NCBI RefSeq assembly: GCF_003704095.1
Contig: NW_020844757.1
Coordinates: forward strand, 62,001-126,000
Direction of reading: 5' to 3'
DNA length: 64,000 nucleotides
Source: Pocillopora damicornis
Taxonomy: Eukaryota
A model generated the notes under the pieces. It was given only the letters and a program-made list of their open reading frames with translations. It had not been told where the DNA came from and made no database searches. Each line of letters starts with the position of its first letter. Position 1 is the first letter of the stretch. Position numbers and translations under genes: made by a program. Below, in pieces: positions 23,008 through 46,616 of this stretch.

Positions 23008-24630
23008 TCATCGCTCCTCAGTCTCTCCGCATTTCTCCTGAGGATATTTTCTATATTTCTCTTGGTAAGAACTCTTTGCAAAGCATCGAGCAGCAATCAG
23101 GTCACATTTGCACAACAGGCTGCGACATTTGCCATAAATCATATATGACGAAGGCCGGTCTGCAACATTAGATTTGAAAAGGAGTAAAATTGGTGAGTAT
23201 TAGTTTATACTAAAACAAACGATAGCATTGAAGGCACGCTCTGATTGGCTGCTCAAACTCCGAAAATCCTTTTCTATTTACCTCCTGCAGCTGATAATAC
23301 TTGTGAGAAAAAATTCGGACTCCCGCCTTTGCGGTCGTTTGATTTGGTTAACACTCGTGCAATTACAGATTTAACTGGACTCCACACGGTTTTGATACCA
23401 TTACCTCGGTATCAAAAAAAGGTAAAAAAAAAAAAGCAGTTTTACATTTGATTGGTCGAGAGCGTGGTGCGATTTCACTTGACCAATCACAAAACGTAAA
23501 GACGCCAAAGCAATGAAAAACCGAAGAATTTGAGACACGGAATTAAAAGTTGCTGTTCAAGGTTTGATCAAGAGTATGTCAATCCTTAATGTTCTTTTCA
23601 TTTGCTTAAGTTTATTTTCTCCAATTTTTTCCTATAAAAGATGTTCTAATATGAATAAAGGGGATAAGTTTCTAAAGAAACTGTGGTGATGCGTCGGTGG
23701 GAGAGTAAAACAAGGTATCATCAACCGAGGTGATAACGTTATTTGGCCACCATGAGGAGTTTTAAAAGCTGACGTTTCGAGCATTAAATCTTCAACTTAC
23801 TGCATTTCGTTTTTTCACCATCTCCGGTTACTGAATACGACATAAGGTACACTGCCTTCTCGANNNNNNNNNNNNNNNNNNNNNNNNNNNNNNNNNNNNN
23901 NNNNNNNNNNNNNNNNNNNNNNNNNNNNNNNNNNNNNNNNNNNNNNNNNNNNNNNNNNNNNNNNNNNNNNNNNNNNNNNNNNNNNNNNNNNNNNNNNNNN
24001 NNNNNNNNNNNNNNNNNNNNNNNNNNNNNNNNNNNNNNNNNNNNNNNNNNNNNNNNNNNNNNNNNNNNNNNNNNNNNNNNNNNNNNNNNNNNNNNNNNNN
24101 NNNNNNNNNNNNNNNNNNNNNNNNNNNNNNNNNNNNNNNNNNNNNNNNNNNNNNNNNNNNNNNNNNNNNNNNNNNNNNNNNNNNNNNNNNNNNNNNNNNN
24201 NNNNNNNNNNNNNNNNNNNNNNAACAACCAGTCCCTTGGGTCATGTGTTTTATCTCTCCTTGTAGTGATCTAATGATCAATCATTCAAACACCCTTTGAC
24301 TCTTGATTCAAGTTTAGCAACGTGAGTGGTAGACGGTTCTTGCAGTAGCTTCGAACTTAGATCCTCTGTAAGTGAAATTTTATTCGAGTCACATGAAGTA
24401 ATTTATATCCTAAAGACTACCATCTAATATCTTACCCATCGATAATACAGCTGAATCCTTGATGTGCTATGAAATTCTCAATCTTAGCTTGTTACAGCTA
24501 CAACTAGCATAATAAAGGTAAGATACTCGCCCGTCCAAATCATCCACGGGTTTGCCTTCCCCACCAATTCCACACCAGCAGCCATAACCAATGAAATCTT
24601 TAGGATTTCTTTCAGTGAACTTATAAACCA
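23008..24630 (-). CDS. Secreted phospholipase A2 paralog 2, partial and gapped (exons <24630-24531, <23863-23801, 23159-23008); may be a pseudogene
   Basis: VYKFTERNPKDFIGYGCWCGIGGEGKPVDDLD (Ca2+ loop); EKAVYLMSYSVTGDGEKTKC; last exon RPSSYMIYGKCRSLLCKCDLIAARCFAKSSYQEKYRKYPQEKCGETEER*. Exon phases match paralog 1. The catalytic HD and exon 1 fall in N-gaps. Confidence 0.8.
23660..23785. mobile_element. Penelope-like element terminal fragment
   Basis: Reverse strand reads ..GCTCGAAACGTCAGCTTTTAAAACTC..; shares sequence with 43130-43250 and 49581-49680. Confidence 0.45.
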
Positions 24631-24764
24631 NNNNNNNNNNNNNNNNNNNNNNNNNNNNNNNNNNNNNNNNNNNNNNNNNNNNNNNNNNNNNNNNNNNNNN
24701 NNNNNNNNNNNNNNNNNNNNNNNNNNNNNNGTTTTTCTTCCAACTGTACACAACTTGTGTCTTT

Positions 24765-44300: not shown

Positions 44301-46616
44301 GTAACTAAACTAGGAATCGAGGAGAATAGCAAGGCTGAAGAGACTTCAAACTATGAACGGCAGGAAGAAAAAGATGCGAGAGTAGAGAACTTTGCTAATT
44401 TACCTATGAACGACGAGCAGCTGCCAAAGAGTGACAAACCACCTGGCCTCTCATATGTAGCTCCGCTGGCTGCTAAAATACCCAAGAAGCCCGTAGAGAA
44501 AGTAATCAAGTTGCCCCCCGCCATATCTCTAATCACGCCAAAGAGAGGTATGACATTATCGCAATGAAAGTGTTTGGTTGTGAGATGAAAGGTTTACCAA
44601 TTTACCACTAAGGATTAACCTTAGAAAATAAAATTACACCGCATTCCATTCACAGAGAATGACAAAAATATCGTCGCTTTGTTTGATATAATTCATAGGT
44701 AAAGATTTCCGAGTGGAAATTCGCTTCACCAAGATGGTTTATACTGATGAGATGCGAGTGCCGGGTAGTAAGGACTTCGAAGAAGCAAAAAGAAACATAA
44801 CTAGTGCCGTAAGCATTTAAATTAACTTGTTGCTTTTGTACTCTAAGATAATCCATTTGTGTTTAGTTCCCAGTATTGTCAAGGTCTATAGTCTCGAAAG
44901 CTAAATATTTAAAATTTTGATCGTAAAACGATCTGATGTTTGTACCTATAGATGAACAGTTTTGTTTCAAGCCATTAAGGTTAAAAAAAAGAATGGTATG
45001 GATTATTTCCCTCTTATTTTGGAGAGTTATATTGGGCTTTTCGGGTGTTTGAATTTGTTTTATCAAGCAAAAAGCAGAGAAAGGTAGTGCGGGAAGGAAA
45101 TATACCCTAGGAGGAGTGGCATACACCTTGAGTTAAATCCTATCCGTTTACATTATTCTGATAACTTCTTTTTAGATTATTAATCTATTCGACGATGATG
45201 ACGGATTCCAAGAAGTGCAGCTGATATCGATACGGTGCGACAAACGATGTGCTTCCCGAAAATAATATATAGATCATCTTGCAAGCTAAAACTATGCACT
45301 CTTTCAGACGGTATTCATTTTTCATGTTAAGGTCATTTTTCACAGGATGCCTTCAAGTTATATCCTTCCAGGTAAACGGCAAAGTTTACTACCGGTTCCA
45401 AACGTTTGCGGAATAATCTTTTCGGGAGAAAATGTTGGAAACACGGGAGAACAATTTTTTGACTTCTTCAATGACTGAGGCCTATAGGTGTTTTCTTTGA
45501 CTGGTTTCCAATTCAGTTAATTCATTTTTTCTTTGCACGAAGCAAAAGTATCTTTTAAAAATGAACATCACTTTAAGAGTAACATTCTAATTAAAGTCAT
45601 TATGCTGAATGAGTTGTCTTCACCGTAAAATAAACTAAAACTACTTTTCCATTGTAGGAATGGCAGTGTGATAGCTACACTTGGGCTCCTTTTTAATAAG
45701 GACAAACCAGGAAATCTTAATCGTCTCTCCCTAGCGCTGATTTCCGGGAAGATCGGAAGCTATCTCGTGGCAAACAAATATGAGTCAGCAGGTAAGGGAA
45801 AAAGGACCTGTTCCTTGCTTTACTGAAAATAAAATTTGGCTCTCTATCATCCAAGGTAATGGAAATTATCTCTAGGTAAATTAAATAGCTTCTCCAGCGA
45901 AACTCATGAATTTTTTCCTGATTTTGCTTTGGCACAAGCAATAGATGAGTTGAATTGGTTTCTATGCAAGCTTAAATGCTTGCCTGTCTCAGTTTTACTT
46001 TGCTGGCTCCATTTACTTAACTTAGTGGTAACTACAAAACTGTTGGCTAAAAACAACTCCACGATATATAATGACTTTATAAGCAGTTTCTGGAGTTGAG
46101 TTTGAAAATATGCCTTTGCTTGTTTGTTTGTTTGTTTTTTCAGTCGCTCTACCAGCAGGATATCTAAGACCTAAAAGACCAATACAGAAACAAAGTGTAG
46201 GAGTATGCGCACAACCATGCTCCAAACCAAACATCTGCTACTCCACAGGTTGCGGTGTAGCCTGCTGCGCCTTTCACCCCCACGAACACAAGTACCACCC
46301 CCCTGCACGCCTCGCGCCACAAGAGCTCCCATCGTGCCCTGGTACATGCGACGACAGCTGTTTCCCAGATTGTGATGATGACTGTTGCACTGACATGATG
46401 CAGGATGTTGCTCCGGCGCCCGCTACAATGACTGGTGCTGCTCCTAGCATGACATGTCCAGGATCTTGTCATTTCTCGTGTTATCCTCAATGCAGCCCAC
46501 AGTGCTGTGCTACACAATACGTGCCAAACCCATGCCACCCCTCTTGCCCGGGCTACTGCGCGCCAAGTTGTGATAACGCCTGTTGCGCGGCTAGGAAATC
46601 CATTGTTAATAAGTAA
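41375..46616 (+). CDS. Secreted CAP/SCP (GAPR-1-like) protein with acidic low-complexity linker and probably four C-terminal minicollagen-type CRDs (NOWA-like), ~612 aa; exons 41375-41423, 42132-42431, 42887-43099, 43744-44547, 46144-46616
   Basis: MKILFSVSVLLCAAAKVLS signal peptide. CAP motifs CLDAHNAVRARHGVPALNW, PFGENL, AVNNWYQE, SHFSQLVW, VARYSPRGN. All junctions are phase 1 GT-AG, including AGAG|GTATGA to tttttcag|TC. Last exon has CPGTCDDSCFPDCDDDCC, CPGSCHFSCYPQCSPQCC, CHPSCPGYCAPSCDNACC and a variant. The CAP part is solid; the link to the CRD exon is inferred. Confidence 0.8.
43130..43252 (+). mobile_element. Penelope-like element terminal fragment
   Basis: TCGAAACGTCAGCTTTGAAACTCTTTATGGTGACAAATTTACATCATCAACTCAGTTGATAA, shared with 49600-49680. 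Confidence 0.45.

Follow-up and report, generated by a model that had tools for sequence, protein, structure and literature searches.

A conserved trio of cysteine-rich-domain, lectin and CAP-SEA genes beside a secreted phospholipase A2 pair in Pocillopora damicornis

Why do genes for secreted phospholipase A2 (sPLA2) lie next to genes for lectin, CAP and cysteine-rich-domain (CRD) proteins in a coral genome, and do they belong together? We addressed this question for a stretch of 64,000 nucleotides of Pocillopora damicornis (assembly GCF_003704095.1, contig NW_020844757.1, positions 62,001 to 126,000, forward strand; the window), in which five neighbouring genes for secreted-type proteins are found between a MICAL-type gene and EIF2B5. 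A first-pass annotation had read these five genes as a single cnidocyte locus that unites capsule wall and venom payload. Six-frame reading and Pfam confirmed the five genes between these flanks and all domains named in that annotation (Phospholip_A2_1 in five exon pieces, SUEL_Lectin in two genes, CAP in two exons). The interpretation survived in part: genes 3, 4 and 5 form a capsule-type block that is conserved in stony corals, while the sPLA2 payload part was not upheld. The reading that we favour, with a probability of roughly 0.55, is an old trio of CRD, lectin and CAP-SEA genes that arose in place and probably encodes structural proteins of the cnidocyst, to which a younger sPLA2 pair is an incidental neighbour. 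Genome searches covered the 234.35-Mb assembly (4393 contigs) and were run per exon or with database proteins, and the joined model of gene 5 was checked by script for an open frame only. The three genes of the trio are located as follows.

29808 to 32741, minus strand: gene 3; exons 32741-32676, about 31963-31478, 30991-30719 and about 30341-29811
36445 to 39427, minus strand: gene 4; four coding exons, 39427-39382, 38437-38374, 37597-37304 and 36960-36448
41340 to 47314, plus strand: gene 5; nine exons, model of 797 amino acids
41340-41421, 42130-42431, 42887-43096, 43741-44545 and 44697-44808, plus strand: gene 5, exons 1-5
45176-45233, 45657-45791, 46150-46612 and 47056-47314, plus strand: gene 5, exons 6-9

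Cysteine-rich domains and gene models of the trio

The strict pattern CX3CX3CX3CX3CC occurred seven times in the window, each time in gene 3 or gene 5, compared to no occurrence in 200 block shuffles. One CRD of variant spacing in each gene brought the totals to five for gene 3 and four for gene 5, in agreement with the counts first reported; for gene 3, the SUEL domain and five CRDs were thus confirmed. When the CRD exon of gene 5 was compared to the PDB, the only matches below E = 1 were the CRDs of Hydra NOWA (2hm3-2hm6, E = 0.003-0.014). The strict pattern in both genes and the match of gene 5 to the NOWA CRD structure support the initial view that genes 3 and 5 bear true minicollagen/NOWA-type CRDs. 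Disulfide cross-linking by such CRDs builds minicollagens, NOWA, CPP-1 and cnidoin into the wall of the capsule (PMC6910907, PMC12549020).

Gene 3 encodes 439 amino acids in the order signal peptide, CRD, Gln-rich and Pro-rich spacer, CRD, SUEL lectin domain (confirmed by Pfam), three CRDs with polyproline and Tyr-rich tail. The transcript-derived protein P0013, also of 439 amino acids, fits the four exons at 87-100% identity, and polyA RNA runs contain about half of the words sampled from the gene 3 stretch. Orthologues in Acropora are named 'proline-rich protein 12-like'. In the ESM Atlas, gene 3 found generic SUEL clusters only (scores of at most 0.76), and a large profile-free protein search with its CRD exon returned just 12 matches, the CRDs being too short and biased for a census. 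A short-period repeat was observed in intron 1 of the gene (32280-32570), which reads as (QSVS/NQSV)n in one plus-strand frame.

Transcript evidence for gene 5 was obtained from contigs of four polyA RNA runs (four studies) aligned to 41300-46700. One 2939-nt contig (run X5) joined exons 1-8 via GT..AG introns, linking the CAP exons to the exon with four CRDs and bearing out their earlier assignment to one gene, and the splice junctions recurred in RNA runs from other studies. Because this contig extends 766 bases past 46612 and matches the window again from 47056, the stop codon at 46614 is spliced out (GT at 46613); the open reading frame continues into a ninth exon and ends at 47314, not at 46616 as first annotated. 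The joined reading was open across all junctions. It comprises a signal peptide, CAP, an acidic/Asn-rich linker of ~270 amino acids, SEA, four CRDs and a basic Arg/Tyr-rich tail, with Pfam matches for CAP (PF00188) in two exons and for SEA in exon 5 (E = 5.5e-4); CAP and SEA are also on record for an Oculina orthologue of 853 amino acids. Within intron 3, a stretch of ~75 bases (43176-43251) reached a summed RNA-contig depth of 230-1200, compared to 2-26 on the exons. Many of these contigs diverge on either side of it and Rfam found nothing there; a dispersed short repeat present in many transcripts is the probable explanation.

Gene 4 encodes a secreted SUEL lectin (Pfam) with an acidic Ser/Thr-rich tail, and its four-exon model contained neither a CRD nor a transmembrane anchor. 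Of the 'SUEL plus mucin stalk' proposed for it, the SUEL domain was therefore retained and the stalk was replaced by this secreted, anchorless tail. Its orthologues are P0063, P0066 (Oculina, 303 amino acids) and P0083 (Montipora). A frameshift in the signal-peptide region was considered and rejected: the poly-T run is the tract that precedes the acceptor, and the first exon lies ~1 kb upstream (39427-39382).

How do these proteins relate to known constituents of the cnidocyst? Gly-X-Y runs were absent from P0013 and the gene 5 model, and Pfam gave no collagen match, which sets the products of genes 3 and 5 apart from minicollagens. Nematogalectins combine Gly-X-Y with Gal_lectin; in genes 3 and 4 we found SUEL and no Gly-X-Y. 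The Gal_lectin/SUEL fold class is nevertheless common to genes 3 and 4, the nematogalectins and NSP3 (PMC6134521, PMC2629781). NSP3, compared by architecture, is collagen-less like genes 3 and 4 and was reported absent from anthozoans (PMC6134521), while gene 3 differs from the nematogalectins by added CRDs and gene 4 by its acidic Ser/Thr tail. Similar to CPP-1, a collagen-less protein of the Hydra capsule wall with polyproline flanked by CRDs (PMC6910907), gene 3 is collagen-less and combines polyproline stretches with CRDs on either side. It differs from CPP-1 by its five CRDs, central SUEL, Gln-rich spacer and Tyr-rich tail, and the likeness is one of design.

Gene 5 shares with Hydra NOWA an N-terminal CAP/SCP domain and a C-terminal CRD array on the same polypeptide, and its third CRD aligns to a solved NOWA CRD. 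Hydra NOWA has eight CRDs, compared to four in gene 5, and Nematostella has four NOWAs. Unlike NOWA, gene 5 has a SEA domain instead of a C-type lectin domain: Lectin_C had no match in any gene 5 exon, nor on the contig of the window in a genome-wide scan, and CAP and SEA are the only domains of the Oculina orthologue. The closest paralogues of its CAP exon are ordinary CAP clusters (C1618, C3966 and C3290), and against the loci that combine CAP, C-type lectin and CRD it scored only 36.8 bits (C3313) or missed E = 1e-5 (C3822), which does not point to descent from the NOWA lineage. Since it has no C-type lectin domain and its CAP is nearer to the ordinary CAP clusters, we regard gene 5 as a separate CAP-SEA-CRD architecture. 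Three canonical NOWA-like loci with CAP, C-type lectin and CRD on one strand were observed in the genome (G000:C3822:88186-93250, C3822:114204-117345 and C3313:434420-439154), the two on C3822 in tandem. A 'split NOWA' that replaces NOWA was rejected as an explanation of gene 5, given these canonical loci elsewhere in the genome.

A SUEL protein with many CRDs was also observed in Hydra vulgaris (P0087; L013:10001-16707, CP147934.1), with 538 amino acids, about ten CRDs and a basic/Tyr tail. Its database name, 'keratin-associated protein 10-4', was probably given automatically and hides a protein of cnidocyst type. The Acropora orthologues and P0087 are built like gene 3, with a signal peptide, SUEL, many CRDs and a basic/Tyr-rich tail. 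The order differs: in the Hydra protein and in P0026, SUEL occupies the N-terminal side, ahead of about 8-10 CRDs, whereas it lies between two and three CRDs in corals. Because the Hydra protein has SUEL, about ten CRDs and a similar tail, the SUEL plus CRD design is pan-cnidarian. The Hydra P0087 locus had no CAP or SUEL neighbour within 10 kb. Another CRD locus of the Pocillopora genome (G000:C4168:79675-80730) is a single long exon that encodes eight CRDs and proline-rich spacers but neither a lectin nor a CAP domain; similar proteins are Oculina P0003 and a 'proline-rich protein 36-like' protein of Actinia.

Local paralogy and conserved gene order

The first-pass annotation had described the five genes as members of unrelated families and had set duplication aside as an explanation for their co-location. 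Neither view was borne out. The SUEL exon of gene 3 had its best non-self match in the genome in the SUEL exon of gene 4 (68.5 bits vs 49 for the next), and this relation holds in both directions. For the CRD exons, genes 3 and 5 were likewise reciprocal best non-self partners (39 vs 34 bits), in a survey by protein-exon searches that is an incomplete census of CRDs. Since neighbours are mutual best matches and the two sPLA2 genes (sPLA2-A and sPLA2-B, see below) are a tandem pair, much of the co-location is explained by local duplication and domain shuffling. Clustering of cnidocyst genes of the same family is not new, because Nematostella gene numbers are close together for nematogalectins 1-3, NOWA-2/-3 and minicollagen-like 3/4 (PMC12549020 supplements).

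Gene order in other corals was assessed by tblastn of the window exons against loci fetched around the orthologues. The order and orientation of the trio (gene 5 head-to-head with gene 4, which is followed by gene 3) were kept in Oculina patagonica (L004), ERZ25067872 (L005-L007) and ERZ25067556 (L008-L012). In Acropora digitifera (L003) the pair of gene 4 followed by gene 3 was kept, and gene 5 would fall outside the fetched stretch. Exact protein look-ups gave no genomic locus for Acropora muricata, A. cervicornis and Montipora, and for A. palmata a transcript contig only. In the robust coral ERZ25067872, the MICAL FAD exon (93% identical) lies 8.5 kb after gene 3 (L007), and no sPLA2 exon was found between the two, even at E <= 10. 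No sPLA2 was seen in the 7.3 kb downstream of gene 3 in Acropora digitifera. The closer relative ERZ25067556 (L011) has one three-exon sPLA2, 8.1 kb downstream of gene 3; compared to sPLA2-B, its first and last exons have 73-79% identity and its catalytic exon has 58%. By this pattern the trio is old, and an sPLA2 beside it is confined to this lineage and one near relative. The linkage expected in other anthozoans was thus found for the trio in three stony-coral assemblies (and for the gene 4-gene 3 pair in Acropora) and not for the sPLA2 genes, which are absent from this position in ERZ25067872 and were not seen within 7.3 kb in Acropora.

The sPLA2 pair occupies the side of the locus next to MICAL.

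23008 to 24628, minus strand: sPLA2-A; last exon 23159-23011, stop codon 23010-23008, readable part of the Ca-loop exon 24628-24531
24765 to 27175, minus strand: sPLA2-B; exons 26325-26178, 25659-25544 and 24898-24768, stop codon 24767-24765

sPLA2-B is complete in three exons, which span positions 2-110 of the PF00068 profile and contain both the Ca loop and the CCxxHDxC motif: exon 26325-26178 encodes a propeptide ending in KR and then the Ca loop YGCWCGYGGKG, and exon 25659-25544 the catalytic His-Asp motif CCYVHDMCY. A candidate signal-peptide exon may lie near 27175-27120, where a hydrophobic start coincides with a block conserved with L011. In its Ca loop, His-Asp motif and PF00068 match, sPLA2-B is similar to the tandem families of Group I/II-like secreted phospholipases A2; for sPLA2-A the comparison is limited to the part that is readable between assembly gaps. 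PF00068 matched both readable sPLA2-A exons. Both gaps of the locus (23864-24222 and 24631-24730) sit within this gene, of which the second hides the 5' part. The catalytic exon, unseen in the readable sequence, is expected inside 23864-24222 from the exon spacing of sPLA2-B. Gap 24631-24730 is probably much longer than 100 bases, because it starts just 34 bases past the sPLA2-B stop codon (24765). The DNA of the two copies is 77% identical in the Ca-loop exon and matches at 91/131 aligned bases in the last exon, and we therefore consider them real, old paralogues; this low identity rules out haplotigs. The donor site after the Ca-loop exon of sPLA2-A (24529-24530) is GC, where sPLA2-B has GT, as would result from a GC-AG intron or from decay of the gene. 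At least 16 sPLA2 exon matches were found in the genome, mostly in tandem clusters. The nearest paralogues of sPLA2-B (63-69% identity) form a separate tandem cluster on contig C305, of which the four 10-kb pieces read contained no CRDs.

Two non-coding stretches of the trio also contained conserved sequence.

33595 to 34472, no strand: conserved non-coding block of 0.9 kb between gene 4 and gene 3
39428 to 41339, no strand: head-to-head intergenic region of ~1.9 kb between the first exons of gene 4 and gene 5

The first is 72-78% identical in Oculina, ERZ25067872 and ERZ25067556, a conservation equal to that of the coding exons, and had neither a frame preference nor a codon periodicity of mismatches; it could represent the 3' untranslated region of gene 4 or contribute to the regulation of gene 3. 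The head-to-head region contains short conserved blocks at 39540-39605 and 41174-41339. The former (66 bases, just upstream of gene 4 exon 1) has 86% identity in both Oculina and ERZ25067872 and may serve as a core promoter or an enhancer. Identity is 74-81% in the stretch that precedes gene 5 exon 1, and the region may function as a promoter.

The flanks of the locus are both on the minus strand, with the MICAL-type gene (FAD, CH and LIM exons) on one side and EIF2B5 (LbH_EIF2B and W2 exons) on the other. An exon for a Cdc37 C-terminal domain at 1491-1808 (plus strand, E = 1.6e-11) marks a CDC37-like gene beyond MICAL. The window has a GC content of ~38% and three runs of N (4381-4480, 23864-24222 and 24631-24730), and Rfam had no match anywhere in it.

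Cell type and competing explanations

The favoured reading joins two components that differ in age. An old array, with gene 5 (CAP-SEA-4 CRD) head-to-head with gene 4 (SUEL, acidic tail) and gene 3 (2 CRD-SUEL-3 CRD) in tandem, most likely formed at this site when a SUEL gene was duplicated and CRD exons were shuffled among adjacent genes. A structural role in the wall or tubule of the cnidocyst is most likely for the products of genes 3 and 5. After secretion into the capsule vesicle, they would be fixed in the minicollagen/NOWA polymer as their CRDs exchange disulfides; such anchoring would bring sugar-binding SUEL and CAP-SEA modules into the capsule matrix. Gene 4 may provide a soluble or matrix-bound lectin partner. 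The sPLA2 tandem pair between the array and MICAL would be younger, confined to this lineage and a near relative, and adjacent by accident.

The best RNA matches for the window came from coral and marine metatranscriptomes. Genes 3 and 5 were present in bulk polyA RNA runs from several studies, in contigs that carry no cell-type or level information. From domain content, expression in cnidocytes is quite probable for genes 3 and 5, has an even chance for gene 4 and is doubtful for the sPLA2 genes. In Hydractinia, a secreted PLA2 is a top marker of putative immune cells, not of nematocytes (PMC12699878). Between Galaxea tentacle types in which NOWA and nematogalectin are also expressed, PLA2 genes show strong differences (PMC7430897).

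Several points weigh against the favoured reading. The cnidocyte expression of all five genes is predicted purely from the domains that they encode. The margin between the CRD exon matches (39 vs 34 bits) is small, and the CRDs are short and of low complexity. An sPLA2 at the same position in at least one relative suggests that this gene is not an accident of one genome, and its absence in Oculina rests on 3.4 kb only. Propeptides ending in Lys-Arg, as in sPLA2-B, are common in nematocyst-targeted proteins. Conserved order by itself is no proof of functional constraint, since the synteny extends to MICAL, which is found beside gene 3 in L007 as well. One Gal-lectin/collagen gene of Acropora is endodermal and not a cnidoblast gene (PMC2629781), which therefore calls for caution with gene 4.

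An alternative explanation, proposed with the first-pass annotation, is that the five genes are one co-regulated cnidocyte locus in which wall and venom genes are kept together by shared enhancers. It draws on the five secreted-type products within ~24 kb, the second coral with an sPLA2 downstream of gene 3, the conserved non-coding blocks in the locus, and the PLA2 activity and transcripts that are prominent in coral tentacles expressing NOWA and nematogalectin (PMC7430897). However, a capsule-plus-payload unit does not agree with the linkage in other corals, since the sPLA2 genes are missing between gene 3 and MICAL in ERZ25067872, unseen within 7.3 kb in Acropora and present as a single copy in ERZ25067556. 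In the Pocillopora genome itself, the other CRD loci (C4168 and C2983) are apart from the nearest sPLA2 cluster (C305) and from the further sPLA2 clusters (C2193 and C280), on different contigs. The CAP domain of the locus belongs to a CRD protein and is not a free venom CAP, and the immune-cell marker of Hydractinia also speaks against this explanation. We consider this explanation quite improbable, and the adjacency of sPLA2 and capsule-type genes, being young and lineage-limited, should therefore not be taken for an operon-like 'capsule plus payload' arrangement without expression data.

The trio might also encode secreted matrix, mucus or immune lectin proteins made by cells other than cnidocytes, with CRD-like motifs used outside the cnidocyst. 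Neither gene 3 nor gene 5 has a minicollagen-type propeptide after its signal peptide, the endodermal Acropora gene sets a precedent, and SUEL and CAP are large families of many roles in this genome (at least 54 and 65 exon or domain matches, respectively, next to at least 150 for C-type lectins). What makes this improbable is the CRD itself, whose strict six-cysteine form is reported only from cnidocyst proteins in PMC6910907, PMC12549020 and PMC6134521, together with the direct sequence match to the NOWA CRD and the same SUEL, multi-CRD and basic/Tyr-tail design in Hydra P0087. The size of these families would also suit a fortuitous grouping of common secreted-protein families that share neither origin nor function, as scanning many windows will meet such mixtures and the surrounding synteny is conserved in general. 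We hold such a coincidence to be very improbable in view of the best-paralogue relations between neighbours, which point to a common local origin of the trio, and of gene order, since four other corals have retained the head-to-head and tandem layout (in Acropora, the gene 4-gene 3 pair only).

Possible meaning for the cnidocyst wall

Beyond the favoured reading of an old trio with an incidental sPLA2 pair, we tentatively propose that the trio may be regulated as a unit in the building of the cnidocyst wall. The ~1.9 kb region would be a bidirectional promoter for genes 4 and 5, the 0.9-kb block would serve genes 4 and 3, and the CRDs would load SUEL and CAP-SEA modules into the wall. If true, the trio would be a second, NOWA-independent and so far undescribed route to a lectin-bearing capsule wall, and the route would be old in Cnidaria, since proteins with SUEL and CRDs also occur in Hydra.

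Literature searches found no published description of the CRD-SUEL-CRD and CAP-SEA-CRD architectures, and their database names are generic only. Both are conserved across stony corals, and the CRD-SUEL type is also present in Hydra. Cross-linked CRD proteins form the fabric by which cnidocysts withstand about 150 bar, and genes 3 and 5 are concrete candidates for building sugar-binding modules into the capsule walls or tubules of anthozoans. The conserved arrangement of the trio also offers a small testable case of how a gene family for a cell-type-specific organelle may grow by local duplication and exon shuffling.

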